Positions 1,474 to 52,100 of a stretch of 64,000 bases of DNA are shown here, in pieces. Source of the stretch: Scyliorhinus canicula (lineage: Eukaryota); the NCBI RefSeq assembly GCF_902713615.1, contig NC_052158.1, positions 34,947,990 to 35,011,989 of the forward strand, given 5' to 3'. Each line of letters begins with the position of its first letter. The first letter of the stretch is position 1. A program made the position numbers and the translations under genes. A model generated the notes under the pieces. That model ran no database searches. It worked only from the letters and a program-made list of their open reading frames with translations, and had not been told where the DNA came from.

Positions 1474-3190
1474 AGGAAGGGGTGGAGGATTTGGTGAACT
1501 TTGGGTAGATGCAGCTGGGTTTAATGCCGTTTCACCTCCGGGGACGTGACTACGGAGTGAAGTCGCCAGTGTATACACACACCGGTCATCACCAACTAAC
1601 TTACCAAGTACAACTCCAAGTGAGGAGCCCAGAACCCTGATCCCCATCCCTCGTGTGCTGTCACACAACCAACATGGCTCCCAAGGGTACACGGCACGAG
1701 TCATCATTTAAAAAAAAATTCAAAGTACCCAATTCTCCCCCCCCCCCTGCAATTTAGCAGGGCCAATCCACCTGCCCTTGTGAGGAGTGCTGATCACTGC
1801 GCCACCGTGCATAAAGGCCTGCACAACCACCTTGCTTGATATTCTGTTACTGTTGTGCTTGACGATTAATGTTGATGTTGCTTGGTCGTACAGGACTCAA
1901 ATATTGCTGAAGGGAGAAACAAGGTGCCACAGTTTTACACCTTGGCCTCATCGGCACAAACACAAGAATGCCAAATATCCAACCATCGCAGCAATTTATA
2001 ATTAACTGTTAACAAGCAATACAAATATGACAATTACGATGAAATGTTGGGATCATTTGAAATTTAGCTTTCTGGTGTTTGTCATTATAAACGGGGCTTG
2101 TTGTGGTGCAGTGGTTAGCACTGCTGCCTCACAGAGCCGATGACCCGGGTTCGATCCTGGCTCCGGGTCACTATCCGTGTGGAATTTGCACATTCTCCCG
2201 TGTCTGCATGGGTCTCACCCCCACAACCCAAAGATGTGCAGGCAGGGTTGGTTACATTGCACATTAATTGGAAAAATAAATAAATAAATGGGCTTGTTTG
2301 AAATTTTATATTCTTGCATTTGACATTAGAAACTGAGATTGTTTGAAATTGGGTGTTCCTGTGTTTGTAATCATAAATTGTCATCGTTTGAAATTTGGCA
2401 TTCTTGTGCTTGTCCTGATGAATCCAACATAAAAAACTTCGGCAACATGTCTATCTTTTTCACCAATAATATGAATGTCAGATAAGTATTAGCTTCTCAG
2501 ATGATTATTATGATTGTGTAGCATATTCGATTTTTTTAAACACACGTGTTTCTTTGCAGTATTAATTTTTAGAATGTGAAAATACTTTTGTTTCTGGCAT
2601 GAATCAATAATTTATTCCTGATGTTTAATTTAAAAAATGAATGCAAATAAACTTCTATATATAACAATAATATTAATCTTTAATATTGTCACAAGTCAGC
2701 TTACATTAACACTGCAATGAAATTACTGTGAAAAGCCCCAAGCCGCCACACTCCGCCATCTGTTCGGGTACACAGAGGGAGAATTCATAATATCCAAATC
2801 ACCTAACAGCACATCTTTCGGGATTTGTGGGAGGAAACAGGAACACCAGGAGGAAACCGACGCAGACATGGGGAGAATGTGCAGACTCCGCACAGAGAGT
2901 GACCCAAGCTGGAAATCGAACCTGGGACCCAGGCGCTGTGAACAAGAGTGCTAACCATTGTGCCACCGTGCCGCCTATTTAGCTGTGAAAAAACTTCAAA
3001 GTATTTATACGTTCCACAAGTTTCCATTAAATCTGATGAATTTTTTTTGGGTGAAAGCGAGAGGGGTCGGAGCCAACAGGTGGTCAGAATATTCTCTGCC
3101 ATGGCCCAAACGTTTGAGCACTGCGTGAGAGAGTTATCAGGCCAGGATATTGGGTGTAAAGTTCCTGAAGCCAGCATCGCCATCTCCTAC

Positions 3191-3387
3191 CTGAATGTCA
3201 GCCACAAGCTTGTGGACGCTCTTCGAGGACGTCACGTCCGTGATGAACACAGAGTGCTGCTGTTGATCGGAGGATAGGCTCCGCAGTGTCTCGGCAGCCG
3301 CACCTTCATCAATATCCACCACTGCCACTGAGGCTCCGTCTTTAGCAAACCGCTGGCAGACAGCTCGCCCAATCCCGCTGCCACCAC
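3191..3387 (-). CDS. HSD17B8: HSD17B8 coding exon 2
   Basis: TTTGTAG acceptor and GTAGGA donor; encodes GGGSGIGRAVCQRFAKDGASVAVVDIDEGAAAETLR...DVTSSKSVHKLVADIQ, ending in phase 0 as I recall for human exon 2. No later exon found in the window. Confidence 0.88.
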
Positions 3388-3419
3388 CTACAAAGTCACG
3401 CAGGACATAAATAAACCTA

Positions 3420-3900
3420 ACCGAGACCAACACTGTGCCCCACGTTAACACTGAGGGACACGGCGCAATAGTACTACAGTATCGGGCCAGCAGGGAGCAG
3501 AGGTGGAAGGAGAGGGAAAGGGAGTTGAAAACCAAGGGAAGGGGAGTGAAAAACGAGAGAAAGCAAGGAAAAGAGAGTGAAAGAGAATGAGTGAGTGATA
3601 GCAAGAGAGAAAAAGTGAGAGAGAGAAAAAGGAAGAGAGAGAAAAGTGGGAGAAAGGGAGAGAGAGTGAGTGAAAGGGTAACAACGAGAGAGGAGAGTGG
3701 GAGAGAGCACGAGAGAGATGGAAAGGGAGAGTGTTTCTGGTAGAATGGGGGAGTGGAGAAAGGACTGGTGAGAATGGCAGTAGAAGGGGCAGAGTGGCAG
3801 TAGAAGGGGCAGCAAGAGTGGCAGTAGAAGGGGCAGCGAGAGTGGCAGTGAGAGTGGACGACAGTGAAAGTCAAGGGGTAAATTGGGGTGGAGGGTGCTG
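3420..3900. repeat. GA-rich low-complexity tract plus short GAGTGGCAGTAGAAGGGGCA repeats in HSD17B8 intron 1
   Basis: Visible purine-rich tract and about three repeat copies at 3770-3850. Confidence 0.8.
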
Positions 3901-9297: not shown

Positions 9298-10908
9298 TCA
9301 GAGGCGCGGAGGGTGGGAAAAGAAAACCACAGGTCTGCCTGCCTGGTTTAGAGTGGCAGCAAGGGCGACATCTGAAGTGTCACTTTCTACTTGAAAGAGC
9401 AGTGTTTTGTCTACTGCGTGCATCCCGGCCTTGGCTATATCGGCTTTGATACGGGCGAATGCATGTTGTACCTCGGCCGCGAGGGGGAATTGAGTGAACT
9501 GTATGAGTGGGCGGGCCTTGTCCGCATAGTTTGGGACCCACTGGGCGTAGTAGGAGAAGAACCCCAGGCAGCGTTTGAGAGCCTTGGGGCGGTGGGGGAG
9601 GGGAAGCTCCATGAGGGGACACATGCGGTCGGGATCGGGCCTCAGAAGTCCGTTTTGGACTACATAGCCGAGGATGGCTAGGCGGGTTGTGCTGAACATA
9701 CACTTCTCTTTATTATACGTAAGGTTGAGAAGAGTGGCGGTGCGGAGGAATTTAGCGAGGTTGGCATCGTGGCCCTGCTGGTCATGGCCGCAGATGGTGA
9801 CATTATCTAAGTACGGAAACGTGGCCCACAAACCGTACCGGTCGACCATTCGGTCCATCTCCCTTTGGAAGACCGAAATCCCGATAGTGACGCCGAAAGG
9901 AACACTAAGAAAGTGATTGAGCCGACCGTCTGCTTCGAAGGCAATGTATGGACGGTCTGATTTCCGGATGGGGAGCTGGTGGTAGGCGGATTTCAAGTCA
10001 ATTGTTGAGAAGACCCGATACTGTGCAATCTGATTGACCATATTAGATATGCGTGGGAGGGGGTACTCGTCGAGCTCCGTGTACCAATTGATGGTCTGGC
10101 TGTAGTCCACGACCATTCTGTGTTTCTCCCCAGTTTTAACCACTACCACTTGGGCTCTCCAAGGGCTGTTGCTGGCCTCGATAATACCTTCCCGATGCAG
10201 CCGCTGGACTTCGGACCTGATGAAAGCCTTATACTGTGCGCTGTACCGCCTGCTCCTGGTGGCAACGGGTTTGCAATCCGGGGTTAGATTGGCAAAGAGG
10301 GAGGGTGGGTCAACCTTGAGGGTCGCGAGGCCGCAAACGAGTGGAGGTAGGGGCCTGCCGAATTTGAGGGTGAGGCTCTGGAGATTGCACTGAAAATCCA
10401 GGCCCAGCAATAGTGCAGCGCAGAGGTTAGGAAGGATGGAGAGGCGGAAGTCGGTGAATTCTACGCCCTGGACTGTAAGAGTGACCATGCAGAACCCTCG
10501 GATGGGGACAGAGTGGGATCCGGTGGCCAGGGAGATCCTTTGATTGGCGGGGTGGACCGCGAGGGAGCAGCGCCTTACCGTATCCGGGTGTATGAAGCTT
10601 TCGATGCTCCCGGAGTCCAGCAGGCAAGAGGTCACGTGGCCGTCGAGTTTCACCGTTGTGGAAGCGGTGGCCAGATTGTGTGGACAGGATTGGTCCAGCG
10701 TCATCGAGGCGAGCTGCGAGTGGTCGTCAGAGGTGTCGGATGGACCCAGATCGTGATGTGTAGTTGGAGAAGACAAGATGGCGGTGTCCAGAGGTCCTGT
10801 GAGGAACAAAATGGCAGCGTCCATGGGGCGCACATTGCGGGGGCGGGACAAGATGGCGGCGCCCACTGGCCGCACGTGGCCCCGGGAGGAGAAGATGGCG
10901 GCGCCCAT
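9298..10908 (-). pseudogene. Gypsy pol fragment: aspartic protease, RT and start of RNase H
   Basis: LLDSGS protease motif; RT motifs IDLKSAYHQ, VPFG and YLDN; ESDTSD RNase H start; frame breaks at the end. Confidence 0.9.
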
Positions 10909-14641: not shown

Positions 14642-17600
14642 AGCACAGTGGTTAGCACAGGTGCTCCACAGCTTCAGGGTCCCAGGTTTCATTCCCCGCT
14701 GGGTCACTGTCTGTGCGGAGTCTGCACGTTCTCCCAGTGTCTGCGTGGGCTTCCTCCGGGTGCTCCGGTTTCCTCCCACAGTCCAAAGATGTGCAGGTTA
14801 GGTGGATTGGCCATGATAAATTGCCCTTAGTGTCCAAAAAAGATTGGGTAGGTTCACTGGGTTACAGGGATAGAGTAGAGGTGTGGGCTTAGGTAGGGTG
14901 CTTTCCAAGGGCCGGCGCAGACTCAATGGGCCGAATGGCGTCCTTCTACACTGTAAATTCTATGATTCCAGCCCCATATATCGGGTGCACATCTGGTCCG
15001 GATCTTCCCAGAGAGGGGGTCCGGTACCTGTCCAATAAATAGGACAATTTGAAAACGAGTAAATGGGCAGAGAGACCCTGTGTCCAAAGGAGGAAAGGGG
15101 TCTTTCAGGGTCAAGTTGGAAAGGATGTTTCCTCATGTGGGAGAATCTAGAATTGGTGGTCAAAGGTTAAAAATAAGGGGTCGTCCAATTAAGATGGTGA
15201 TGAGAATTTCTTTCTCTCAGAGTCGTCAGTCTCTGGAACTCTTTTCCCTAAAAGACTGTGGAAGCAGAATCTTTGAATGTTTTTAAGGTAAAGCCAGATA
15301 GAAGGATGTGAAAGGTTATCAGGGGTCGGCAGGAATGTGGGTTGAGGTTACAATCAGATCAGCTATGATCTTATTGAATGGTGGAGCAGGCTTGAGGGGC
15401 TGAGTGGCCTCCATTATTCGTATGGAAGTTGACAACCTGGTTACAATAGTGTATTGGGCTCTTTGGGTTTATGAATAGAGGAATAGCATATGAAAGCAAA
15501 GGGAACATGCGCTAACTGTATAAATCACTGATTAGGCCTTAGCTGAAGGTTAATGGACAACTCTGGGCTTCACGAACGATGTAAAGGCCTTAGAAAGGTT
15601 CCGCAGACGGATCACACGGATGTTACCAGAGATGAGGGACTTCATCTATGAACAGGGCATGGAAAAGTTCAGACTCTTATCCTTGGAACAGAGGTTAAAA
15701 GGTGACCTAATAGAGGATTTCAAGATGCTGAGATGTTTTGACCTGCAACTATTCACTCTGGAGAGTATCAGAGGTGATAGATCTGAAATCTAGAAGAGAG
15801 AATTTTTTTCGCACTGAGATTTGTTAGGATCTGGAGTTCTTAACTCGTTGACAGGATGTGGGCTTCGTTGGCGAGACAAGCATTTGTTGCCAATCCCTAA
15901 TTGCCCTTGAAGATGGTACACACGGCTGCCACTGTGCGCCGGTGGTGGAGGGAGTGAATATTTGTGGAAGGGGTAGCAATCACACGCGCTGCTTTGTCCT
16001 GGATGGTGTCGAGCTTCCTGAGTATTGGAGCTGTACTCATCCAGGTAAGTGGGGAGTATTCCATCACACACCTGACTTGTTCTGGTAGATGGTGGACAGG
16101 CTTCAGGGCTTCAGGTGAGTTACTCGTCGCAGGATTCCCAGCCTCTGACTTGCTTGGTAGCCACAGAATTTATATGGCTGGTCCAGTCCAGTTTTCGAAG
16201 CTCTGAAAACGTATTGTTGGGGTGATGTCAGAAATAATTTCAGGAGGGACTTGGCCAGGCAGTTGGGAAAGAGGACCATTGGGGTTATGGAGCAAAATCA
16301 GGGGGCTGGCGGACTAAACACGGCTAGGGTAGGCCTGCCATCTCTGCTGCGGATTTCCACAATCCCACAAACTGCTGCTTTGGTTTGGAAGGGAACACCC
16401 TCTGGATCCTAAACAGAGCAGCAGAGCCCCCTCCCAGCCATTCTCCTCAGTGGGTCGTGGAAATCCACTCAAGGTGGCACCACTCTGAACCAGGCAGCCA
16501 TTTCTCATGCTCCAAGTGCAGACAGCAGCAAGCTTTGGCAAGGCTCAGTACTAGGGCCCATTGGAGCTCCATTCCTCCAGCACACAGCTGGGTGGAAGTG
16601 CAGAGACTGAGGCGCGGTGGTCCCCAGGTCTGACCAAGGGAAGGGTGAAGGTGGGTCCTTCAGGATGTCCTGAGCGAGAGCGAGATGGAGAATTTACTTC
16701 CTCCTGTTATTGCCTTCTCCCCCTCACCCTTTGAGGCAGTTAACAACAGGGGCATTTTGCTCTTTCATTTGTACATCTGTTTTTTATTGTGCCTTTCTAA
16801 CATTTCCTTTGAATTTTACTTCAGCGCTCTTGAAAGTTGAATGCATTCTGTTTCTAAATAAATCTTCCCATTCTCGTTCGTTAAGATTTTATTAGTATAG
16901 TTCGCAGTAACATATGGGGGCAAGCAACCAATGAAGTGATATGTACAAACTAGCACATTCCATTTGAGGTCAAAGTTAACAGAAGAATGAAAATGCATTT
17001 TCTTTGATTTTTGTTTTTAAATGACCGCTGTTTAAGCTTTGCCACTTGGAGAGGAGCGAGCTCGAATTGGAGCTGACCAGGTGAAGATACGGCCTACAAA
17101 GGCTTGATTTGACAGCCCGGCCTTGATGCGTGGCTGCCTCCTGCACAGACTCAACCGGTCTCAGCTCCGGTCTCCCGCTTCATTTTAGAGCACAATTGTG
17201 TAGGACTCATGATTGGATAATCCTGGCCACTCTCTCTCTCTGGTCTGCCCACCCCCACCTGAAGCAGCCCCTTCAGCAGGCTGACTGCTTATCTCGCACG
17301 ACCTGCCCGCCGCGGTCCCTTTGAATTCCACCTTCCGCCCCAAAACCGTAAAACTCTCACCCGCCGTTTCCCAATCCCACCATGGCCTCGGCCCCTTTAT
17401 CTCATAGCCTCCTGCAGTCATGCAACCCTCTGAGATACTGCGCCCTGCAATTCTTTTTAAAATAAATTTAGAGTACCCAATTCATTTTTTCCAATTAAGG
17501 GGCAATTTAGCGTGGCCAATCCACCTACCCTGCACATCTTTGGGTTGTGGGGACGGAACCCACGCAAACATGGGGAGAACCTGCAAACTCCACACGGACA

Positions 17601-18626
17601 GTGACCCAGGGCCGGGATTGAAACTGGGACCTCGGCACTGTGAGGCAGCAGTGCTAACCACTGCACCACCCTGCTGCCCCGTGCTAAAGAATTATGAGTC
17701 GATAGATTCAAACTACTTGGACATTCGGGCAAGTGGAATCACTTCCTGTTTGGGTTGCTCTTCACGACTGTCCTTCAAAACTGCGTTGGGTGCCAGCAAT
17801 TGCTCAAAGCGCCTTTGGGAAGCCATAGCTATGTGGTTAGAGATCCAGTGAGCTCCACTGCTGCGTCACAGCTGTCATCTGCCCTTCTCAACGAGGCATC
17901 TCGTCACCTGCCGGACTCTGTCAGCCTGCTTCGTCCCCTTCACTAAACGGGCGCAGGTATCCCCCATCCCCAACTCCAATTCAGGCCTGGAAATTTAGGC
18001 CTCCCTCGCTCTCTTCCCCTCTTGTTTTCTTTCCCTCCCTCCACTCCGAGGACTCGTCTGGCCGAATAATTGCCTTACTGTGCCACTGTGACTTTGGCCG
18101 CAGAAGGAATAGTGAGAGAGTGTGTCATTAAATACTCCCGTAAATACGGAAAAGGTGAGGCAGGATCCCCAAGCGTTGCCGCAAGACTACATTGTGAACA
18201 ATTTTGTCAGTTAACTGTTCCTCTGATGCACAGGCTCAGTTACACGAACGAATGAGCTGAAAGCTTGTAAGCTGCTTAAACGATCGCTGCCCACCCACAG
18301 GACGTTGGGAATGTACATGGGCGCAGGTTCGGTGCCCAGTTTGGCATCTCTCCTAGGATGGGCGCAAGACGCGGAAGAATGCCACCATTTGGTTGTTTCA
18401 ATCCCAGGGCAGGGCCAAGACTGACTTTGCGCGCCGTGGGTTTTTAAGTCTGCGTGGAAGTCGGGGTAAAAGGCAGCCCCCCCCGACTCGTGTCTGTCAT
18501 CTTTTGTTTCAGCGCCAGTGGGCAGAAGCTAGGAAACTCTTTAGGCCAATGGGCTTATCACAAAATGTCAAATTCAACGGCGAATGGGGGGGGGTGGAGA
18601 GGGGTGGGTGAGTTTACAGACTCAAC

Positions 18627-20011
18627 CTAGCAGGCGTAATAGGACCAGCAGGACCACGACAAACCAGCGACGCCCAGCGTGACGGCGGAAAGCTCAGCAT
18701 CACCCACCAAGGCACACCACACGCCACTGTAGCCCAGCAGGCCAGCCATGATTGACCGGTTACCCAGATGGCCCATCAAGGACAAGCAGAGTCCCATCAG
18801 GCCCAGCCCGACCCAGCAGACACCAGCCAGCTGGTGAAAGCTCAGCAGGAGAAGACACAATCCAACGTAGCCCTTGACTCCGCCACACCACCAGCAGACC
18901 TCGGCCACGTTGGCGTAGCCCAGCAGGGACAGGCAGAGACCAGCGTGTGCCAGGAGGCCGCAGCAGACCCACCAGACCCAGACCTCGTAATCCGACAGCC
19001 AGACCAGCCCGGCGAGGGCCCCCAGGTTGGGCACCACCCAGAACGGCCACGGGCGACCGCTCGAGGCCAGGAGCAGCCCGACCAGGCTCAGCCCCAGCAA
19101 GCAGGCACCCAGCAGCCGGGCATAAGCCAGCAGCAGGCAGCTCAAGCCGGCGTAGCCCAGAAGGCCGCTGGACAGCCAGGAAACACCCGCCAGGCTCCGC
19201 TTGCCCAGCAAAGCCCAAAGCCAGCCGGCAGACCCCAGCATGCCACAGCACACCAGGTACATCTCGGCGAAATTAGCACTCCCCGGCGAGGCGACGCCCA
19301 GCAAGACCAATACACCGAAGCAGAGCCAGGCTCTTTTCCACATGCTCCAGTCCCAATGGAAGCTGTTGGCACTCGCCAGGGGGACAGAGCTTGTCGCGTC
19401 CTCCCTCTCACAAGCCAAGCATGGGCTTATTTGCTCCTCCTCCTCCTCCTCCTCGGTGATGGGGTTTGAGACGGTCGAGTGACACAGCTGAAGAGGCTCG
19501 GCATTCCTGCCCCCCTGGTTCAGTCCTGGACTGAAGAAAGGGTAGAGTTTCTGGGTGAAGGTGCCTCTGAAAGTGTGGAGGTGGGACATGGCATCGGCAT
19601 TGTAAAAGGACACTTGCCCTCCCTCACAGTCCAGGTAGACGCCAATCACCCGGGGCTTGACATCTAATTGGAGATTGCTCATTGTCAACGTGAAGGCCGT
19701 GTACTTACTCCCGTTCCTCAGCCCCATAACCCAGTACCCATTGGGAGGCGTCAGGAGGATTTCCCCTTTCCTGCTGACTGACTCCCCGGCCACGCCCAGG
19801 GTCCAGCTGCTCTTGCGGCCCACATTCACCTCCCAGTAGTGCCTCCCTGACGTGAATGCCACCGAGGCGAGGACGCAGGGGCAGACGTCAAATCTCTGCG
19901 GGTCGTCGGGTAAGGGCCGTTTCTGATTCCCCTGCGCCACGCTGGTCAGGTCCTCGGACAGAACGAGCCAGGGACTGGCTGTGACGGGGTCCAGGGTCAG
20001 CGAGGCCGGTC
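18627..20011 (-). CDS. TRIM gene exon 6 (last): PRY/SPRY (B30.2), acidic linker and multi-hydrophobic tail
   Basis: CTGTTACAG acceptor in phase 1; PRY/SPRY motifs LTLDP, FTSGRHYWEV, IGVYLD.EGG.VSFYN and LYPFF; 1385 nt open to TAG at 18627. Confidence 0.93.
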
Positions 20012-20064
20012 CTGTAACAGAAACAGATTGAGGGTAAGTTAGATGCAAGGATTTGCGGATACCT

Positions 20065-22506: not shown

Positions 22507-25208
22507 AGGCAATCTTTGGACCAGTTGATAAGGCAATCTTTGGACCAGTTGATGAGGCAATCTTTGGACCAGTTGAGGTTTCCAAAGGTGGAAGTGGACC
22601 TGGTGGAGGGGCGGGGGCCCCGATTGAATTGGAGGAGATTGTGAAGGGTATAGAGGGCATGCAATCGGGTAAAGCCCTGGGGCCGGACGGTTACCAGGTA
22701 GAATTCTATAAGAAATTTTCGGAAATATTGAGCCCACTCCTGATGAGGACCTTCAATGAGGCTAGAGAGAAAGGAACCCTCTCCCCAACAATGTCACAGG
22801 CTTTGATCTCACTCATTCTTAAACGAGGGAAGGACCCGGAACATTGCGGGTCATACAGGCCGATTTCCCTTTTAAACGTGGATGCCAAATTGCTAGCTAA
22901 GATTCTGGCCACAAGAATTGAGGATTGTGTCCCAGGGGTGATAGAGGAAGACCAGACTGGGTTTGCGAAAGGCAGACAATTCAATGCCAATGTCCGGAGA
23001 CTTTTGAATATTATGATGCCCTCAGAGGGAGGGGAGGCAGAGGTGGTAACACTGATGGACGCAGAGAAAGCCTTTGACCAGGTGGAGTGTGAGTACCTCT
23101 GGGAAACGCTGGGGAGGTTCGGGTTTGGTGAGGGCTTTATTGGCTGGGTGAAATTGCTGTACCAGGCGCCTGTAGCAAGTGTATGTACAAACAGGCTGAG
23201 GTCGGGGTACTTCATGCTTCACTGGGGAATGAGTCAGGGGTGTCCCCTCTCTCCGTTAGAAGTGCTGCTCCCTAGAAATAGAACCACTAGCTATGGCACT
23301 GAGAGCCTTGAGGAACTGGCGGGGACTGGTCCGGGGGTGGGGGGGGGGGGGGGGGGGGGGGGGGAACATCGGGTCTCGCTGTACGCGGATGATTTGCTCC
23401 TGTTCATTTCGGACCCGGTGGAGGGGATGGAGAAGGTTCTGCGAATCCTGAGGGATTTTGGTAGTTTTTCAGGGTACAAACTGAACATGGGAAAGAGCGA
23501 GTTGTTTGTGATCCAGGCCAAGGGCCAGGAGAAGAGACTGAAACAGCTGCCGCTCAGGATGGTAGAGAAAAGTTTTCGTTACCTGGGTATACAGGTGGCC
23601 AGGAAATGGGATGCCCTGCACAGGCTCAACCTGACCTAGTTGGTGGACCAAATGGAAGGGGACTTTAAAAGATGGGATATGCTCCCTCTGTCACTGGCAG
23701 AGAGGGTGCAGACCGTGAAAATGACTGTCCTCCCCAGATTTTTGTTTGTCTTTTAGTGCCTCCCCATTTTCATCCTTCAGGCCTTTTTTAAGCGGGTGAG
23801 TAGGATCATTACGGGCTTTGTGTGGGCGAATAAGACCCCGCGAGTAAGGACATCGCTGTTGGAGCGCAGTCGTAGGGGGGGTGGTTGGCGCTGCCGAACT
23901 TTCACAACTACGTGGGAGCAGCTGGAGGCGGCGTCTTGCAAAGGTACTAGGCTGGGAGCTTTGATAACAGCTCCTTTGCTGTTCTCGCTGACCCACTACT
24001 CCGCAGGTCCGGTGGTGGTGGCGACACTGCGGATCTGGGGACAGTAGAGGAGGTACAAGAGGGTGGAGGGAGTCGGTCTGGACCCCGATATGCAACAATC
24101 ACAGGTTTGTCCCGGTTAAGATGGATAGTGGGTTCCAGAGCTGGCAGAGGGCAGACATCAGAAGGATGGGGGATCTGTTCATAGACGGAAGCTTTCCCAG
24201 TTTGAAGATGCTAGAGGGCAAATTTAATCTGCCGCCAGGAAACGTTTTTAAATATCTGCAAGTACGAGCCTTCCTGAAAAAACAGCTAGCGGCCTTTCCG
24301 ACGCTGCCACCACTGAGGATACAGGACAGGGTGGTCACCGGCACCTGGGTGGGGGAGGGGAGGGTATCGCATATCTACCAGCAACCACAGGAGGCGGAGG
24401 AAACCCCGGTGGAGGAGCTCAAGGGCAAGTGGGAGGAGGAGCTAGGTGAGGAGTTGGAAGCGGGTCTGTGGGCAGAGGTCCTGGGCAGGGTTAATTCCTC
24501 CTCATCATGTGCCAGGCTCAGTCTAATTCAATTTAAGGTGGTGCACCGGGCAGCGAGAATGAGCAAGTCTTTTGGGGTAGAAGACAGTTGTATGAGGTGC
24601 AAGGGCAGCCCAGCAAACCATGTCCACATGTTTTGGGCTCGCCCGGAGCTCATAGACTTCTGGCAAGGGTTCGCGAGGGCAATGTCCAAGGTGCTTAACA
24701 CACGGGTGGTGCCGAGTCCAGAGATAGCGATCTTTGGAGTGTCAGAAGACCCGGGAGTCCAGGGGGCGAAAGAGGCCAACGTCTTGGCCTTTGCGTAGCC
24801 CGGAGACGGATTTTATTAATGTGGAGGGACCCCAAGCCCCCCCGAGTGTAGAGACTTGGTTTCCGACATGGCTGGGTTTCTCAGCCTCGAGAAAATAAAG
24901 TTTGCTTTAAGAGGGTCTATGCTAGGGTTCTCCCGGAGGTGGCAGCCGTTCGTCTACTTTCTCAGGGAAAATTAAAATGTCAGCAGCAGCAGCAATCCAT
25001 GGGGGGGGGGGTGGGGAGGGGGTGAGTGCTTCATTGGGATGGTGTGGGACGACTGGGTCGCATGGGGGTAATGTCTATTTAATTGTTATTGTATATTCTC
25101 TTTTTGCACTATGTTAATGTTCACTCTAGTTTGTTTTGTTATTAAGGTTACTACTGTTTTATTATGAAAAGTTCTTCAAAACCTTAATAAAAATATTTTA
25201 AAAAAAAG
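22507..25208 (+). mobile_element. 5'-truncated, decayed L1-clade LINE in TRIM intron 5, antisense to the gene
   Basis: RT (YADD) and C-terminal fragments homologous to ORF2 at 49107-52901; A-rich tail; 16-bp TSD AATTTCAAATAACTCA at 22491-22506 and 25209-25224. Confidence 0.92.
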
Positions 25209-25225
25209 AATTTCAAATAACTCAC

Positions 25226-25341
25226 CTGGTTTGATGAGAGCCCTTAATTCCTTCCACACGCTGTACTGCACAGGACCTTTCAACACCTCCAAGGGGGGAT
25301 CGTCAGATATATCCTTCAGTGCCTTAAAGTCTCCTGGAGTC
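25226..25341 (-). CDS. TRIM exon 5 (116 nt)
   Basis: ACACAG acceptor and GTGAGT donor, phase 2 to 1; encodes ...LKGPVQYSVWKELRALIKP, the usual pre-PRY linker. Confidence 0.88.
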
Positions 25342-25443
25342 CTGTGTACATGAAAATTTGTCAACATCTCTGGGATGAAACATCAAACGCAATAATTAAT
25401 CTCTTTGGGTGTTTCTTTTCTTTCCATGAATTAAAACACATAC

Positions 25444-25466
25444 CTCTGCTTTAGAAGGTTCAATCC
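25444..25466 (-). CDS. TRIM exon 4 (23-nt micro-exon, GLNLLKQR)
   Basis: Long pyrimidine tract and AG, GTATGT donor, phase 0 to 2; this size is typical of B30.2 TRIMs. Confidence 0.85.
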
Positions 25467-26791
25467 CTTCATGAAAAAAAAGAAAGAAAATTATTTTAAT
25501 TGACGCTGAATATTTTGCCCTGCCTAAACATATTACACAGTTCGTCTGCTAGACTGCTTAAATAGGTAGTTGAGAATTATACTTTGACAAGCGGTTAATC
25601 TTGAGTTTTTAATCATATACTTGCCACACGCACACACACACATCAGTCTGTCAGGTTGACACACGCCCATGCATGCGCACACACACACCTGTCTGGAGCA
25701 CTGGGCGGAACCTTCCGGGCCTGTCAGAAGCTGGGAGCTTGGCAGGGAAACCTAATGTGGCGTGCGGCCAAATGTCAGTTTGCTGACGGTGGGATGTACT
25801 TTAGGAATTCTGTCATCTGGGACTTCGAAGGTGGGTTAATGGCGGCTGGAGCTTATCCGGCGAAAGATGCTGGGAAGCCATTTTGCATGGCCGTGGCATG
25901 TCAAGCGTTAAAAGGGCCACCTTGTCGGGATTAAGCCCACCCCCCTCCCTTCCAAAATTACATTGACCACCAACGAGAAATTTGAAAGTTCATGTTCCCA
26001 GCTGCGCACATGGTGAGGTAGATTCCCCCCCACCATTAATGGTGAGTTTGCCGCCGCATTGTTCTCCATGGGAGGAAGTGGTGCCTCTGTAAATGGCAGC
26101 CTGCACTTGAGACCGGGCGGCGGCAGCACGTGTTGGGGGGAGGATGACCAATAAAGGGAGGAAGGCTCGTCCGCATTTGGGGAAGGGTGGAGGGGCAAAG
26201 GTGGAAGGGACATAGTGCTGGCTGTCCAGGTGCCCTTTAAATATGGCAACTGGGTTCGACCCTGTGAAGTAACAGCACTTTCTGACTGGTTCCGCCCTCC
26301 CTCCCTCCCATCACTGTGAGAATCGGAGAGCTATCCCCTCCGACCCACCGCTTCCCATGTCCACTCCTGCCACCAAACTTAGACTCCAGAACGGGAGGCA
26401 TAACCTCTCGACGGGTCCATAGAATCCCTAACATGCAGAAGGTAATTTGGCTCATCATGTCTGACACCGCCCCCCCCCCCCAACCCCCACCTACCCTGCT
26501 CTATCCCCGTAACCCCGTGCATTGATCATGACCAATCCACCTAACTTGCACATCTTTGGGCTGTGGGGAGGGAACCGGAGCACCCGGAGGAAGCCCACGC
26601 AGACACGGGGGGAAAGCGCAAACTCCACACAGACAGCCATCCGAGGCCCGAATCGAACCTAGATTCCTGGTGCCGTGAGGCCGACAGCTCTAACCACTGT
26701 GCCACCGTACCGCCCGGCCGTTCCCAGCATTTCTACACCGACAGGAATATAAGATTATGTCTGCAGAAAGTCTGCAATCCCATTCCATTAC

Positions 26792-27025
26792 CTGCAGGAA
26801 CTGTATGTCATCTTGTTCCGCCAACTGTTCTTTTCTCTTTACGATTTCCACACCGACAGACGTCAGTCCTTCCTGGATCTCCCCCAGTCTCGTTTCCATC
26901 CTTTTCATGTCAGTTTCCACATTTCCCTCCAGTTTCTCCACCAAGCTCTGCTCCTTTCTCTCGATGAGCTGGCCTATTTCAGCGAAGCACTGCTTGACGT
27001 GCCTCAAGTCAGTCAGAAATGCCTC
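26792..27025 (-). CDS. TRIM exon 3 (234 nt, coiled coil)
   Basis: TTGCAG acceptor and GTAATG donor, phase 0-0; EAFLTDLRHVK...DDIQFLQ. Confidence 0.9.
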
Positions 27026-27153
27026 CTGCAAGGGAGAGAAAACCCAGCGTTTACAAGGGGGGCCGCCATCACTGGGGCGGCGGGGGGCGGGCAGGGGTGA
27101 TGGACAGGAAAATGAGTCACCCAGTGACAAGAGAAAACCCCTGCTGGACCTAC

Positions 27154-27249
27154 TTGCACCGCTGTGATGTTGCGTTTTTGTTCATGTCGGACCTCGATGA
27201 GCGTTGTCTCCTCCTCGTTCAGCTTCTCCAAGGATTCTTTCAGTGCGTC
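27154..27249 (-). CDS. TRIM exon 2 (96 nt, coiled coil)
   Basis: TTGCAG acceptor and GTAGGT donor; the classic 96-nt TRIM exon, DALKESLEKL...ITAVQ. Confidence 0.9.
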
Positions 27250-27394: not shown

Positions 27395-27770
27395 GGTAGC
27401 ACAGTGGTTAGTAATATTCTGCTTTTAGCTCCTTGGTTAAGAAGGATTGTGGGATACCTTCCTCTAACAATAGCACAGTGGTTAGCACTGTTGCTTTGCA
27501 GCTCCAGGGTCCCAGGTTCGATTCCCAGCTTGGGTCACTGTCTGTGCAGAGTCTGCACGTTCCCCCCCGTGTCTGTGTGGGTTTCCTCCGGGTGCTCCGG
27601 TTTCCTCCCACAAGCCCCGAAAGACGTGCTGTTAGGTGAATTGGACATTCTGAATTCTCCCTGTGTGTACCCGAACAGGTGCCGGAATGTGGCAACCAGG
27701 GGCTTTTCACAGTAACTTCATTGCAGTGTTAATGTAAGTCTACTTGTGACAATAATAAAGATTATTATTA
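27395..27770 (+). mobile_element. tRNA-derived SINE, second tail type (ending AATAATAAAGATTATT), in TRIM intron 1
   Basis: Box A/B head and distinct 3' part also seen at ~2660-2950, 38060-38190, 53810-53980 and 61150-61330. Confidence 0.8.
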
Positions 27771-28620: not shown

Positions 28621-28701
28621 ATCTGTGCACCAGAAACACACACACTGGACAGAATCGAAACACAGTTAATCATTGCACTCATGTTGCCCTGCAGCCCTCA
28701 C

Positions 28702-29127
28702 CTTGTGAAGTGTGACAGAGGCAGCTATGGTGCTGACCAGGTGCTGTTGGTACTGCCCTCCCTCCTGGCACAGGGCACACAGGAGTGCCTGCTCGCTCTG
28801 GCAGTAGTGGCTGTACTGGGCTCCGTGCCGAGGGCAGCAGCGACCCCCCTCCTCCTCCTCCTCCTCCTCGCCCCCGGGAGCCTGGCTCTCCCGGACCTGC
28901 TCCACCGCGTTTCTCAGAGCGTGGACCGCCTTGGTCCTCCTGTCGGGGAATTCGGCCCGGCACTCCGGGCAGGACACCCGGGGCTGCTGCTTGTCCCAGA
29001 ACTGGTTGATGCAGGGCTGGCAGTAGCTGTGCCCGCACTCCAGCGTGCTGGCATCGACGAGGAGCTGCAGGCAGATGGGGCACAGCAGATTCTCACTGAG
29101 ACTCACAGCCTTTTCGCTGGCTGCCAT
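28702..29127 (-). CDS. TRIM exon 1: C3HC4 RING and degenerate B-box 2
   Basis: GAGATGG start; CPIC..CGHSYCQPC..CPEC RING; CPRH..C..E..C..C..Y..H B-box; GTGAGG donor, phase 0. The six exons sum to 2280 nt (759 aa plus stop). Confidence 0.93.
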
Positions 29128-29144
29128 CTCGGACACTTTCTCTC

Positions 29145-29158
29145 CTTTCACTTTCACT
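29145..29158 (-). promoter_or_regulatory. ISRE/IRF element upstream of the TRIM ATG
   Basis: AGTGAAAGTGAAAG matches the GAAANNGAAA consensus; an extra GAAAGT half-site lies closer to the ATG. Confidence 0.6.
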
Positions 29159-29539
29159 CCAGCTCAGACACACACACCTCTTTCTTTCTATCCCTCTCTC
29201 TAATTATATATCTTTACTTCTATATATATATATGCATTTAACACATTCCAGTAACACCCTGAGAATTGGCAGACAAAGGGCAGGAATTATTGGGAGGCAG
29301 CAGAAATATCAACAACATTTAGCTTCGCAGGTCCTCGACTGGTTTCTCTTCCGTCCCGCCTCAACGGATCAAGAAAGTTGATTCACCACCTCCCCCCCCC
29401 CCCCCAGGTTCCTTCCTGTCTGGCAACTGAGTAAATATCAGTTCAGAGGTCACTGTTCAGGAGCCACACACTCACAAACATTTACTGTCTCTTTCAGGTG
29501 TGGCTCAGTGAAGCAGCGCTGGGCTCAGAAGCATAGAAT

Positions 29540-33649: not shown

Positions 33650-36600
33650 CCTCGATTCACGCGCCCCCGCTTCACACACCCTCACTTCACACACCCTCAC
33701 TTCACACACACCCTCACTTCACACACACCCTCACTTCACACACCCTCACTTCACACACACCCTCACTTCACACACCCTCACTTCACACACACCCTCACTT
33801 CACACACACCCTCACTTAACACACACCCTCACTTAACACACACCCTCGTTTTACACACCCTCGCTTCACACACCCTCGCTTCACACACCCTCACTTCACA
33901 CACCCTCGCTTCACGTACCCTCACTTCACACACACCCTCACTTAACACACACCCTCGTTTCACACACCCTCGCTTCACATACCCTCACTTCACGTACCCT
34001 CGCTTCACACACCCTCACTTCACACACCCTCACTTCACACACCCTCACTTCAAACACCCTCACTTCACACACCCTCACTTCATACACCCTCGCTTCACAT
34101 ACCCTCACTTCACACACACCCTCACTTAACACACCCTCACTTCACACACCCTCGCTTCACACACACCCTTGTTTCACACACCCTCACTTAACACACACCC
34201 TCGTTTCACACACCCTCGCTTCACACACCCTCGCTTCACACACCCTCACTTCACGTACCCTCGCTTCACACACCCTCACTTCACGTACCCTCACTTCACA
34301 CACACCCTCACTTCACACACACCCTCACTTCACACACCCTCACTTCACACACCCTCACTTCACACACACCCTCACTTCACACACATCCTCACTTCACACA
34401 CCCTCACTTCACACACCCTCACTTCACACACCCTCACTTCACACACCCTCGCTCCACGTACCCTCACTTCACATACCCTCACTTCACACACCCTGACTTC
34501 ACACACCCTCGGTTCACACACCCTCGCTTCACGTACCCTCACTTCACACACCCTCACTTCACGCACCCTCACCACACACCCTCACTTCACACACCCTCGC
34601 TTCACACACCCTCACTTCACACACCCTCGGTTCACACACCCTCGCTTCACGTACCCTCACTTCACGCACCCTCACTTCACACACTCTCACTTCACACACC
34701 CTCGCTTCACACACCCTCACTTCACCCTCGCTTCACACACCCTCACTTCACACACCTTCGCTTCACACACCCTCGTTTCACACACCCTCGCTTCACACAC
34801 ACCCTCACTTCACACACCCTCGCGTCACACACCCTCACTTCACGTACCCTCGCTTCACACACCCTTGCTTCACACACCCTCACTTCACACACCCTCACTT
34901 AACACACCCTCACTTCACTCACCCTCACTTAACACACACCCTCGTTTCACACACCCTCGCTTCACGTACCCTCACTTCACGTACCCTCACTTCACGTACC
35001 CTCACTTCACGTACACTCGCTTCACACACCCTCGCTTCACACACCCTCACTTCACACACCCTCACTTCACACACCCTCACTTCACACACCCTCACTTCAC
35101 ACACACCCTCACTTCACACACCCTCACTTCACACACCCTCACTTAACACACCCTCACTTCACGCACCCTCACTTCACACACCCTCACTTTACGCACCCTC
35201 ACTTCACACACCCTCACTTCACGCACCCTCACCACATAACCTCACTTCACATACCCTCGTTTCACACACCCTCACTTCATGCACCCTCGCTTCACACACC
35301 CTCACTTAACACATACCCTCGTTTCACACACCCTCGTTTCACACACCCTCGTTTCACGCACCCTCACTTCACGCACCCTCACTTCACACACACCCTCGCT
35401 TCACACACCCTCACTTCACGCACCCTCACCACATAACCTCACTTCACACACCCTCACTTCACGCACCCTCGCTTCACACACCCTCACTTCACGCACCCTC
35501 GCTTCACACACCCTCACTTAACACACACCCTCGTTTCACACACCCTCGTGTCACACACCCTCGTTTCACACACCCTCACTTCACACACCCTCACTTCACA
35601 CACCCTCACTTCACATACCCGCACTTCACGCACCCTCGCTTCACACACCCGCACTTAACACACACCCTCGCTTCACACCCTCGCTTCACGCACCCTCGCT
35701 TCACGCACCCTCGCTTCATGCACCCTCACTTCACGTACCCTCACTTCACACACACCCTCACTTCACACACACCCTCACTTCACACACCCTCACTTCACAC
35801 ACCCTCACTTCACACACACCCTCACTTCACACACATCCTCACTTCACACACCCTCACTTCACACACCCTCACCTCACACACCCTCACTTCACACACCCTC
35901 ACTTCACACACCCTCGCTCCACGTACCCTCGCTTCACATACCCTCACTTCACACACCCTGACTTCACACACCCTCACTTCACACACCCTCGCTTCACGTA
36001 CCCTCACTTCACACACCCTCACTTCACGCACCCTCACCACACACCCTCACTTCACACACCCTCGCTTCACACACCCTCACTTCACACACCTTCGCTTCAC
36101 ACACCCTCACTTCACACACCCTCGCTTCACACACCCTCACTTCACACACCCTCGGTTCACACACCCTCGCTTCACGTACCCTCACTTCACACACCCTCAC
36201 TTCACGCACCCTCACTTCACACACTCTTACTTCACACACCCTCGCTTCACACACCCTCACTTCACACACCCTCGCTTCACACACCCTCACTTCACACACC
36301 CGTGTTTCACACACCCTCGCTTCACACACACCCTCACTTCACACACCCTCGCTTCACACACCCTCACTTCACGTACCCTCGCTTCACACACCCTTGCTTC
36401 ACACACCCTCACTTCACACACCCTCACTTAACACACCCTCACTTCACTCACCCTCACTTAACACAACCCTCGTTTCACACACCCTCGCTTCACATACCCT
36501 CACTTCACGTACCCTCACTTCACGTACCCTCACTTCACGTACACTCGCTTCACACACCCTCGCATCACACACCCTCACTTCACACACCCTCACTTCACAC

Positions 36601-48439: not shown

Positions 48440-49106
48440 GGCCTGGGAACATACGTTGGCCAGCGTTGTTTCCGCTGTGGCTGTTTTGTTCCAACTGTTT
48501 CAACTTTTTCAACTTCGAAATGTGTGTTATGTATGCTGGTTTTCTTTTTGCTCTGTTTACGGGTGGGTTTGTCTGTTGGGTATGGTTGTGGGGTAGGTGG
48601 GGAGTGTTGGGGGTTTGTGTTCTATATGTTCTCTTCTGTACGGGGCTGGGGATTGAGGGGAAACTGGATTTTGGGGAACTGCGTCAGAAGGGTGGGGTGT
48701 GGCAGTATGAAAGCGCGGGCTTTCCTCTGGTTTCCCGCGCTGCGGGGCAAGGGGGTGGAGCTTGCGATGGGGGAAGGGCCTCTACGGGTCTTTTTTCCTG
48801 CGCTGCAATAATGCCAAGGAGGTGTGGCAAGAGGGGGATGACCCCAAGCCGGGAGGGGATAGGTTTTGGCGGGAGCTGCCGGGGTCAGCAGAAGTCAGCT
48901 GACTCACGGAAGTACCATGGAGGGTGCGTCGCGGCTAGGAGGGGTCCTAGCCTGGGGGGGGGAGGGGGGTGGGGGGGGATACCGGGTTGCTGCTGGAATG
49001 ACTAGGAAGGAGCCGATGAGGGCCGGGGGGGAAGAGGAGAGGCGCTATCGCCATGGGGAACGGGTCGAGCGGGGTATGCTGGCCTGGGGCGAACATCTGC
49101 CAAGCT

Positions 49107-52100
49107 ATGGCTAGTCGGCAGGGGAGGGGGGCGGGTTGCCCTCTGATCCGGCTGATTACCTGGAACGTGAGGGGGCTGAACGGGCCGGTTAAGAGAACCA
49201 GGGTGGTCTCCCATCTAAGGGGGTTGAAGGCGGACGTGGCTATGCTCCAGGAGACCCACCTGAAGGTGGCGGACCAAGTCCGTCTGAGGAAGGGGTGGGT
49301 GGGGCAGGTTTATCATTCAGGATTGGACACAAAGAACCGGGGGGTGGCGATTCTAGTGGGGAAGAGGGTGGCGTTTGAGGCGGCTGAGGTGGTGTCGGAC
49401 AAGGAGGGCAGATATATCATGGTGAGGGGTAGGCTGCAGGGAGAGAAGGTGGTGCTGGTGAACGTATATGCCCCGAATTGGGATGATGCTGGCTTCATGA
49501 GGCGCTTGTTGGGCCGCGTCCCGGACCTGGAGGCAGGGGGCCTGATCATGGGGGGAGATTTTAACACAGTGCTGGATCCCACACTGGACCGGTCCAGTTC
49601 AAGGACGGGTAGGAGACCGGCGGCGGCCAAAGTGCTGAGGGGATACATGGACCAGATGGGAGGGGTGGATCCCTGGAGGTTTGGGAGACCGAGAGCGCGG
49701 GAGTATTCCTTTTTCTCTCACGTCCATAGGGTTTATTCCCGGATAGACTTTTTTGTCCTGAGCAGGGGGTTGATCCCGAGGGTGCAGGATGCCGAGTATT
49801 CGGCCATAGCGATTTCAGACCATGCCCCGCACTGGATTGATCTGGAGATGGGGGAGGCACGGGACCAGCGCCCGCTCTGGCGCCTGGATGTGGGGATGCT
49901 GGCGGAGGAGGAGGTGTGTAAGAGGGTTCGGAGAAGCATTGAGGGGTATCTGGTTACCAATGATACGGGGGAGGTCCAGGTGGGGATGGTCTGGGAGGCT
50001 CTGAAAGCAGTGATCCGGGGGGAGCTGATCTCCATCCGGGCCCACAGGGAAAGGAGGGAGAGGAAGGAGAGGGAGAGACTGGTGGGAGAGCTTCTGGAGG
50101 TGGACAGGAGATATGCGGAGGCACCGGAGGAAGGGTTGCTGGGAGAACGGCGCAGGTTGCAGGCCAATTTTGACTTGTTGACCACCAGAAAGGCGGAGAC
50201 ACAGTGGAGGAGGGCGCAGGGTGCGGTATATGAGTATGGAGAGAAGGCGAGCAGGATGTTGGCGCATCAGCTCCGTAGGCGAGATGCGGCTAGGGAAATT
50301 GGGGGAGTGAAGGATGGGGGTGGAAATGTAGTGCAGAAGGGGACAGAAGTAAACGGGGTCTTTAGGGACTTTTACGAGGGATTGTACCGGTCGGAACCTC
50401 CGAGGGGGAGAGAGGGGATGGAGAGCTTCATGAACAGGCTATGTTTCCCAAGGGTTCAAGAGAGGCTGGTTGAGGGGCTGGGGGCGCCGATAGAGTTGGA
50501 GGAGCTAGTCAGGGGGATCGGGCAAATGCAGTCAGGTAAGGCCCCGGGGCCGGACGGGTTCCCGGCAGAATTTTACAAAATATATGCGGACCTGGTGGGT
50601 CCCCTGCTGGTGCGAACTTTCAATGAGGCGTGGGAGGGGGGGGCTTTGCCCCCGACGATGTCGCGGGCACTGATCTCTTTGATCCTAAAACGGGATAAGG
50701 ACCCCTTGCAGTGCGGATCATATAGGCCTATTTCACTCCTTAACGTAGACGCTAAGTTGCTGGCGAAGATCCTGGCTACCAGGATAGAGGATTGTGTGCC
50801 AGAGGTAATTCATGAAGATCAGACAGGGTTTGTCAAGGGGCGGCAGCTCAACACGAATGTGCGGAGACTGCTCAATGTTATCATGATGCCGGCAGTGGAG
50901 GGGGAGGCGGAGATAGTGGTGGCGCTGGATGCAGAGAAGGCGTTTGATAGAGTTGAGTGGGGGTACCTATGGGAGGTGCTGGAGAGGTTTGGATTTGGGG
51001 AGGGATTCATCAAATGGGTGAGGCTGCTTTACGCGGCGCCGATGGCGAGTGTAGTCACAAATGGAAGGAGATCGGAGTATTTTAGGCTTTATCGTGGGAC
51101 CAGGCAGGGGTGTCCCCTGTCCCCCCTGCTCTTTGCACTGGCGATTGAACCGCTGGCCATGGCGTTGAGGGAGTCAGGGAAGTGGAGGGGTCTGGTGCGG
51201 GGGGGGGAGGAGCACCGGGTATCGCTGTATGCAGACGACCTGCTGTTATATGTGGCGGACCCAGAGGGGGGAATGCCGGGGGTGATGGAACTGTTAGCGG
51301 AATTTGGGGGCTTCTCGGGCTATAAGCTGAACTTAGGAAAGAGCGAGGTATTTGTAGTGCACCCGGGAGATCAGGAGGAGGGAATTGGGAGGCTCCCCTT
51401 CAGGAGGGCAGTGAAGAGTTTCAGGTACCTGGGGGTGCAGGTGGCCAGGAGTTGGGGGGCTCTTCATAAGCTTAACTTCACCAGACTAGTGGAACAGATG
51501 GAGGAGGAATTTAAAAGGTGGGACATGGTGCCGCTATCGCTGGCGGGCAGAGTGCAATCCGTCAAAATGACGGTTCTCCCGAGGTTCTTGTTCCTCTTCC
51601 AGTGCTTGCCCATCTTTATCCCTAGGGCCTTTTTTAAAAGGGTGACCAGCAGCATCATGGGATTTGTTTGGGCGCATGGCACCCCGAGGGTGAAGAGGGT
51701 CTTCTTGGAGCGGAGTAGGGATGGGGGGGGGCTGGCGTTGCCCAACCTCTCGGGGTATTACTGGGCGGCCAACGTGTCGATGGTGCGTAAGTGGGTGATG
51801 GAGGAGGAGGGGGCAGCATGGAAACGGATGGAGAGAGCGTCCTGTGGGGATACAAGCCTGGGGGCCCTGGTAACGGCGCCGTGGCCGCTCCCTCCCACGA
51901 GGTATACCACGAGTCCGGTGGTGGCGGCTACCCTCAAGATTTGGGGGCAGTGGAGGCGACATAGGGGAGAAGTGGGGGGCTCGATGGAGGCTCCGTTAAG
52001 GGGGAACCATAGGTTCGTCCCGGGGAACATGGATGGGGGATTTCGGGGATGGTATAGAGCGGGCATTAGACAGCTGAAGGACCTGTTTATCGACGGAAGG

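Follow-up and report, generated by a model that had tools for sequence, protein, structure and literature searches.

A catshark TRIM of class-IV architecture with a conserved, putatively membrane-embedded domain beyond its B30.2 domain

TRIM proteins that carry a B30.2 (PRY/SPRY) domain have been treated as soluble cytosolic sensors, while the mammalian members of class C-XI, TRIM13 and TRIM59, are not known to carry a PRY/SPRY and end in a single C-terminal span. The family is sorted by its C-terminal domains into eleven classes, C-I to C-XI, the last being defined by a C-terminal transmembrane domain (PMC10445537), and what the preliminary description of this locus had said about membrane TRIMs agrees with that definition. 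Class-IV members, such as TRIM72/MG53, TRIM21, TRIM39 and the Xenopus A33 / nuclear factor 7 protein, comprise a RING, a B-box, a coiled coil and a PRY/SPRY, in this order, and end a few residues after the SPRY. Butyrophilins are built as Ig-TM-B30.2, with an Ig ectodomain, a single span ahead of the B30.2 and no RING. In zebrafish btr31, a transmembrane segment replaces the B-box and the coiled coil (PMC3137616).

Here we analyse a TRIM gene of the catshark Scyliorhinus canicula that lies in a 64,000-nucleotide stretch of contig NC_052158.1 (positions 34,947,990 to 35,011,989). This stretch is called the window below, and catshark coordinates refer to it. As in class IV, the protein has a RING and a PRY/SPRY, with a probable B-box and a probable coiled coil between them in the usual order, the exon pattern is the same with the B30.2 in the last exon, and it shares 40-44% identity with shark paralogues named 'zinc-binding protein A33-like'. 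The class-IV feature of a chain that ends just after the B30.2 is absent, however: 284 more codons follow in frame, which are transcribed and conserved, and the catshark orthogroup thereby adds a linker of ~50 residues, with a glutamate run, and a hydrophobic domain of ~235 residues, hereafter the tail.

A C-terminal hydrophobic part on an RBCC protein, here a putative membrane anchor, is also found in TRIM13 and TRIM59, but the catshark protein differs from these in its SPRY, in its ~10 predicted tail helices, and in a tail without sequence similarity in the databases searched; neither of the two was present among the matches listed for the catshark TRIM. With butyrophilins the protein would share a B30.2, predicted to be cytosolic, on a putative membrane protein, and the catshark B30.2 scores equally high against BTN3A1 and against TRIM21. 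Unlike butyrophilins, it has a RING, and its putative membrane part comes after the B30.2; no Ig domain was found by Pfam in the protein (P0001), whose N-terminus is the RING. The arrangement differs as well from that of btr31 described above. The literature searched, with incomplete journal coverage, contained no TRIM in which a multi-pass domain follows the B30.2 and no work on this catshark gene; the preliminary description had not recognised the architecture from described TRIM classes.

Since the gene model is already an automatic RefSeq prediction ('zinc-binding protein A33-like', 759 aa), the protein sequence itself is not new; what is new is the recognition and analysis of the tail architecture. 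Our main reading, to which we give a probability of roughly three in four, is that the gene encodes an elasmobranch-specific, six-exon class-IV TRIM E3 ligase, the last exon of which adds an orphan hydrophobic domain of ~235 residues as a membrane anchor.

Gene layout, transcript and ligase domains

The features of the gene, from the 5' to the 3' end of the transcript, are as follows.

28701..29348, minus strand: exon 1, with the 5'UTR and, from the ATG at 29127, codons 1-142 for the C3HC4 RING and a probable B-box; from tblastn, RNA contig pieces and Pfam
27153..27248, minus strand: exon 2, 96 nt, where the probable coiled coil begins; from joints 27248/28701 and 27024/27153 in contigs of 3-4 runs, and tblastn
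26791..27024, minus strand: exon 3, 234 nt, probable coiled coil; from RNA joints and Pfam TRIM_CC (residues 165-271)
25446..25465, minus strand: micro-exon 4, ~20-23 nt; 20 letters within the joint 25343/26791 in contigs of runs X10, X2 and X7, with a unique match in the window
25225..25343, minus strand: exon 5, ~119 nt, linker ahead of the PRY; contigs run on into 20014-17643
19483..20011, minus strand: last exon, PRY/SPRY (B30.2); from Pfam PRY and SPRY and the alignment with TRIM72 (7xt2)
19335..19482, minus strand: last exon, acidic linker, poorly conserved, a Glu run and then a Trp-rich stretch ending in Lys-Arg; from the shark alignment, with dN/dS 0.21-0.68
18630..19334, minus strand: last exon, hydrophobic tail of 234 residues, with a predicted N-terminal helix, two homologous 4-helix units of ~95 residues (P0001 548-640 and 641-736) and a C-terminal helix
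18627..18629, minus strand: stop codon TAG, read from the sequence
17642..18626, minus strand: 3'UTR of at least 985 nt, of balanced base composition; the assembly breaks at a SINE-like repeat

The last exon thus holds the PRY/SPRY, the acidic linker and the tail in a single frame on the minus strand, from 20011 to 18630, with the stop at 18629-18627. The open reading frame itself occupies 18627..20048, and a splice acceptor (ttacag, then g) sets the true start of the exon near 20011. In the exon translation (18630-20009, minus strand), the PRY covers residues 4-52 and the SPRY residues 56-169. The SPRY end motif PLQLC is located at ~19480-19495, and therefore the B30.2 end that the preliminary description had placed at ~19482 was right; the acidic run and the polar turns listed there (KRS, YAR, GRP, DYE, YAN, FHQ, GNR and DAE) are all found in the translation.

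By its domain matches, the protein is an ordinary class-IV TRIM as far as residue 475. The RING families PF15227, PF13445 and PF00097 all score above their cut-offs over residues 16-56, and all eight RING zinc ligands are invariant in 6 sharks. The B-box match (PF00643, residues 96-123; E 7.9e-4) reaches 20 bits, under the 24.1-bit cut-off; its ligands C98, H101, C117 and C120 are invariant in sharks, and in the TRIM72 alignment this region falls on the B-box. The coiled coil (PF25600, E 1.7e-5) reaches 25.2 bits, under the 30-bit cut-off, and the alignment to TRIM72 is unbroken through this region, residues 10-474 of the catshark protein aligning end to end with TRIM72 (7xt2). Within the B30.2, Pfam E-values are 4.8e-21 to 6.7e-21 for the PRY and 9.7e-27 to 2.8e-26 for the SPRY. 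The architectural part of the preliminary description holds: the protein is a RING / B-box / coiled-coil / PRY-SPRY TRIM, complete apart from the sub-threshold scores of the B-box and the coiled coil, with a conserved, transcribed and hydrophobic tail predicted to be all-helical.

The last-exon stretch is present in many catshark RNA runs. Single contigs from four runs, each of a different study, cover 17642-20014, from the PRY/SPRY to the 3'UTR, without an internal joint, which is the unspliced read-through that had been proposed as a check. RNA coverage drops sharply in the intron directly upstream of the last exon, and contigs containing this exon also splice to 25225-25343, 25446-25465, 26791-27024, 27153-27248 and 28701-29348. 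Furthermore, one contig of 3467 nt contains the whole mRNA, with the 5'UTR, the coding sequence from the RING through the tail, and ~1 kb of 3'UTR. Because single contigs span 17642-20014 and join the upstream exons, transcripts neither splice nor terminate ahead of the tail, which is part of the mature mRNA. This evidence consists of assembled contigs, so that rare isoforms are possible and depth is uninformative on tissue or induction.

Two further observations concern the RNA data. A second contig of run X2, 160 nt long (19812-19971), has 8 differences from the window over the PRY/SPRY and is probably a paralogue or a divergent allele. Short interspersed repeats at 17434-17701, 26410-26711 and 27467-27768 reach a summed RNA-contig depth of 10^4 to 10^5 with many variant joints, and one of them ends the assembled TRIM 3'UTR near 17642.

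Conservation, predicted fold and membrane character of the tail

A database search with the tail returned the catshark protein itself and found the tail, at 54-80% identity, in Cetorhinus, Heterodontus, Heptranchias, Pristiophorus and Stegostoma, and a partial Chiloscyllium protein also has it; the tail frame is retained in seven sharks, which represent both superorders. The tail alignment contains 83 invariant positions, many of them Trp, Cys, Gly or Tyr, and no frame-breaking indels. In the genomic DNA of Heptranchias and Stegostoma, the PRY/SPRY and the tail are encoded in one unbroken exon. Nei-Gojobori dN/dS, which rests on three species, is 0.17-0.55 for the tail, 0.18-0.40 for the PRY/SPRY and 0.21-0.68 for the linker, and these values are rough since dS is near saturation. 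As far as such comparisons tell, the tail is kept in frame under purifying selection in sharks of both superorders, and the check on orthologues suggested in the preliminary description came out in favour of a retained tail frame, with tail values similar to those of the SPRY.

The RBCC-SPRY part of these orthologues is 56-72% identical, and all other TRIMs, those of chimaera and batoids included, stay at or below 44%. Close shark paralogues have ~475 residues and end five residues after the SPRY. Since the paralogue from the same genome (P0098, 476 aa) covers residues 1-475 in the alignment and goes no further, ending five residues past the SPRY end motif, the tail is by this comparison an addition specific to one orthogroup.

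The tail is composed mainly of L (23%), G (15%), A (11%), V (9%), S (9%), W (7%) and C (7%), with ~5% charged residues. Profile autocorrelation reveals periods of 23 and 26 residues (z >6) and an offset of 95 residues (z 10.6). The two halves of the tail (P0001 548-640 and 641-736) match each other in hhalign with 98.7% probability (E 4e-16, 41% identity), and aligned together they show a common pattern. The tail repeats a unit of ~24 residues, marked by spaced Gly and conserved Trp/Cys, and contains two copies of a predicted 4-helix block of ~95 residues. As read from these repeats, the tail is built by internal duplication.

AlphaFold2 predicts 10 helices for the full tail from a six-sequence alignment, with low confidence (pLDDT 59.5), in line with the 9-10 hydrophobic stretches counted in the preliminary description. 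The half unit, modelled from a 14-row alignment (both halves from each of seven species), is predicted to form 4 helices with a pLDDT of 77.5. Foldseek searches of the AlphaFold DB clusters and the PDB gave no significant match, either for the low-confidence full-tail model (E >0.05) or for the half-unit model (E >1), and TM-scores were mostly low in both cases. At this weak level, the full model best resembles soluble helical repeats, and the better half-unit model mostly picks out small 4-helix membrane proteins.

According to our main reading, the tail helices would form a polytopic bundle in a membrane, with as many as 10 spans. Their true count is uncertain, anywhere from 4 to 10, because ten helices are predicted and, on an approximate scale, only 4-7 windows of 19 residues per orthologue have an apparent insertion energy of <=2 kcal/mol; all of these windows are in the tail, and the tail-less paralogue has 0. 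The low number of windows passing this crude threshold would also suit a tail that is real and conserved but does not span the bilayer, forming either helical hairpins in one leaflet (on the ER surface or on lipid droplets, for instance) or a helical repeat that is hydrophobic and associates with itself. Hydrophobicity is no more than moderate in several of the predicted helices (mean Kyte-Doolittle 0.9-1.2), which contain much Gly, Ser and Trp; one helix spans just 11 residues, the predicted loops are very short (3-6 residues), and the best, if weak, structural matches of the full model are the soluble repeats mentioned above. Helices 4 and 8, however, are strongly hydrophobic (Kyte-Doolittle >2.0) over ~18-19 residues, charged residues are scarce in the tail as a whole, and the weak matches of the half-unit model are for the most part small membrane proteins. 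Moreover, if ten alternating spans starting from the cytosol are assumed, the loops on the N-terminal side carry 3-5 K+R per species, versus 0-2 for the loops on the opposite side, where the conserved acidic turns SDYE and GDAE sit; this charge pattern matches the positive-inside rule for alternating spans in 6/6 sharks. We consider a non-spanning tail unlikely; it would still localise the ligase, with another topology.

The structure prediction that had been proposed as a check on the tail returned helices with transmembrane-like hydrophobicity, 4 of them strongly hydrophobic and up to 10 in all. In the models, the K/R distribution fits a polytopic tail with both ends in the cytosol. The RING and the B30.2 would then remain cytosolic, and with both ends on this side the coiled-coil dimer would be held on the membrane surface, where the B30.2 could pick substrates and the RING ubiquitinate them. 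Ig V/C2-set-B30.2 genes, which are butyrophilin-like, adjoin the TRIM orthologues in several sharks in a conserved manner; an immune role could be guessed only from this neighbourhood and from the usual roles of class-IV TRIMs, and the interferon-induced, antiviral or quality-control function proposed in the preliminary description would be a putative one.

A tail-only frame in the little skate and the origin of the domain

Pfam gave no match in the tail at E up to 1, and a sequence search of the PDB gave no match past residue 480. In the ESM Atlas, a feature search with the tail had a best score of 0.69, under any useful level. An exhaustive HMMER profile search of the tail against 1.84 billion representative proteins found two clusters only, the shark TRIMs and one protein of the little skate; by the searches made here, the tail is without a detectable relative outside elasmobranchs.

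The skate protein, an 'uncharacterized protein' of 292 aa (P0007; Leucoraja erinacea, JAMYXN010000067.1), matches the tail profile at E 5e-45. Its open reading frame (L003:10001-10879) encodes the tail alone, including the two repeat halves, at 45% identity to the shark tails; a word-based search with it matched only itself. The frame sits between an Ig C2-set gene and a short-chain dehydrogenase (adh_short) gene, a position that is syntenic. In the catshark window an exon of an adh_short gene (3137-3874, minus strand) is likewise found downstream of the TRIM, which supports conserved synteny. Directly upstream of the skate frame, and in the same frame, lies a decayed copy of the last ~50 SPRY residues, broken by a stop, and the start codon of the skate frame is the Met of a conserved SPRY motif. 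The decayed SPRY matches 5/6 sharks with z 4-6.7, the comparison with Stegostoma falling short of significance. In the 10 kb upstream, no RING, B-box, coiled coil or PRY could be detected.

A free tail of this kind might suggest that the hydrophobic module acts in its own right, as a channel, pore or membrane scaffold, with the TRIM part regulating or delivering it, and that it may be a fused downstream gene. Helices with spaced glycines, such as those of the tail, are typical of tightly packed or pore-lining helices, and the little skate has retained the module, with both halves, at the syntenic position. The skate frame begins, however, inside a decayed in-frame SPRY, shortly after a stop, which argues for a truncation after an older fusion. 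Its third codon position is not more A-poor than the first and second (A 0.08, versus 0.09 and 0.11), in contrast to the shark tail, where A makes up 0.03 of position 3, and no free-standing tail homologue occurs elsewhere among the 1.84 billion representatives. An autonomous module is in our view quite improbable.

As the skate frame starts in a decayed, in-frame SPRY C-terminus, the SPRY-tail fusion would predate the shark-skate split. The simplest reading of the two loci is that both the fusion and the internal duplication are older than this split, and that the skate locus later lost the ligase part. The skate frame looks like a 5'-truncated remnant; it would be either a truncated relic, possibly a pseudogene, or a membrane module released from its ligase.

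With regard to the source of the domain, the lack of relatives elsewhere, the T-rich second codon positions and the nested repeats fit the birth of a domain beyond an old stop codon followed by tandem duplication, and the tail would most likely have arisen in this way, from sequence 3' of the old stop through stop loss and then tandem duplication. Membrane peptides can arise de novo from thymine-rich sequence (Vakirlis et al. 2020, PMC7005711). Like those peptides, the catshark tail is lineage-restricted and hydrophobic, has a T-rich position 2 and no homologues elsewhere, and shows signs of growth by tandem duplication. Unlike them, which are young, short, free-standing yeast ORFs, it is large, apparently older than the shark-skate split, and fused to an old gene. 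From the resemblance we infer, by analogy, that the tail may have originated as the thymine-rich peptides did. Taken to its full extent, this would mean that an elasmobranch-specific domain was born de novo beyond the stop of a class-IV TRIM, that a helix of ~24 residues was duplicated repeatedly into a membrane bundle of ~10 helices, giving a twelfth TRIM architecture, an integral-membrane RING/B30.2 ligase, and that skates kept the membrane module alone after loss of the ligase; we offer this sequence of events tentatively, as one that is possible and rather doubtful as a whole.

Coding signal, surroundings and meaning of the tail

Past the SPRY, the frame is free of stops for 284 codons, for which base composition alone expects 6.5 stops and gives a probability of 0.0015 of finding none; the observation that the same exon runs past the B30.2 without a stop into ~235 hydrophobic residues therefore stands. 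Within the tail the reading frame contains 0 stops, and the two remaining minus-strand frames contain 5 and 4. The codon positions of the tail (A 0.03 at position 3, GC3 0.81 as in the SPRY part, position 2 rich in T) give a periodicity that resembles that of the SPRY part and fits a coding hydrophobic sequence. The strand encoding the tail has merely 7.8% A, and stops are scarce in every frame; this A-poor composition partly accounts for several fairly open frames and for ORFs that overlap the tail on both strands (233 aa on the opposite strand, 163 and 89 aa in the other minus-strand frames). A DNA tandem repeat or minisatellite as the source of the open frame was ruled out by repeat searches, TRF giving only a 30-nt and a 21-nt array and a seed-based search only motif matches of 16-24 nt, none of them relevant. 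Across four RNA data sets, 0 variable positions were found in the 853 nt of linker and tail versus 10 in the 985 nt of 3'UTR (Fisher p 0.0024); the SPRY part has three variants across the RNA data sets, of which 2/3 are synonymous.

That the tail is a non-functional chance frame in A-poor, GC-rich 3' sequence, merely read through by the annotation, is hardly credible: the low A content, the overlapping frames and the occurrence of another stretch of the window open in several frames (54650-56008, a minisatellite) would fit it, but 6-7 sharks share the frame and many unchanged Trp, Cys, Gly and Tyr positions, with no frameshifting indels, dN/dS is below 1 and similar to that of the SPRY, codon periodicity is present, the other frames do contain stops, no tandem DNA repeat underlies the tail, and variants are confined to the UTR when linker and tail are compared with it.

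The rest of the window contains several unrelated elements. The stretch at ~54650-56054 is a pure minisatellite with units of ~39-42 nt, open in several frames with identical repeated peptides; it bears little likeness to the TRIM tail and is unrelated to it. A tblastn search for paralogous tails elsewhere in the window gave only chance matches in minisatellite sequence at 55.5-56.1 kb, and such paralogues were rejected. On the plus strand, 49053-52901 holds an unbroken ORF of 1282 aa with an endonuclease (Exo_endo_phos) and a reverse transcriptase, a LINE ORF2 that looks intact, and 22629-23639 holds a reverse-transcriptase ORF within intron 5 of the TRIM gene. A fragment of an LTR-retrotransposon pol (protease, RT and RNase H) is present on the minus strand at 9298-10908, downstream of the TRIM gene. 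Two plus-strand ORFs, at 34169-35146 and 35718-36431, have weak pentapeptide-repeat matches under the Pfam cut-offs and most likely stem from the translation of simple repeats.

The history of this large orphan domain can still be read, from a helix unit to a 4-helix block and then to its duplication, and as the tail would predate the shark-skate split it offers a good case for studying the birth of membrane domains. The skate remnant represents a natural experiment in which the membrane module has been parted from the ligase. If our main reading is true, a conserved B30.2 TRIM with a multi-pass membrane domain would add an architecture to the TRIM classification, and sharks would possess a natural, membrane-fixed E3 ligase for sensing pathogens or substrates, in the oldest jawed-vertebrate lineage with interferon and MHC.
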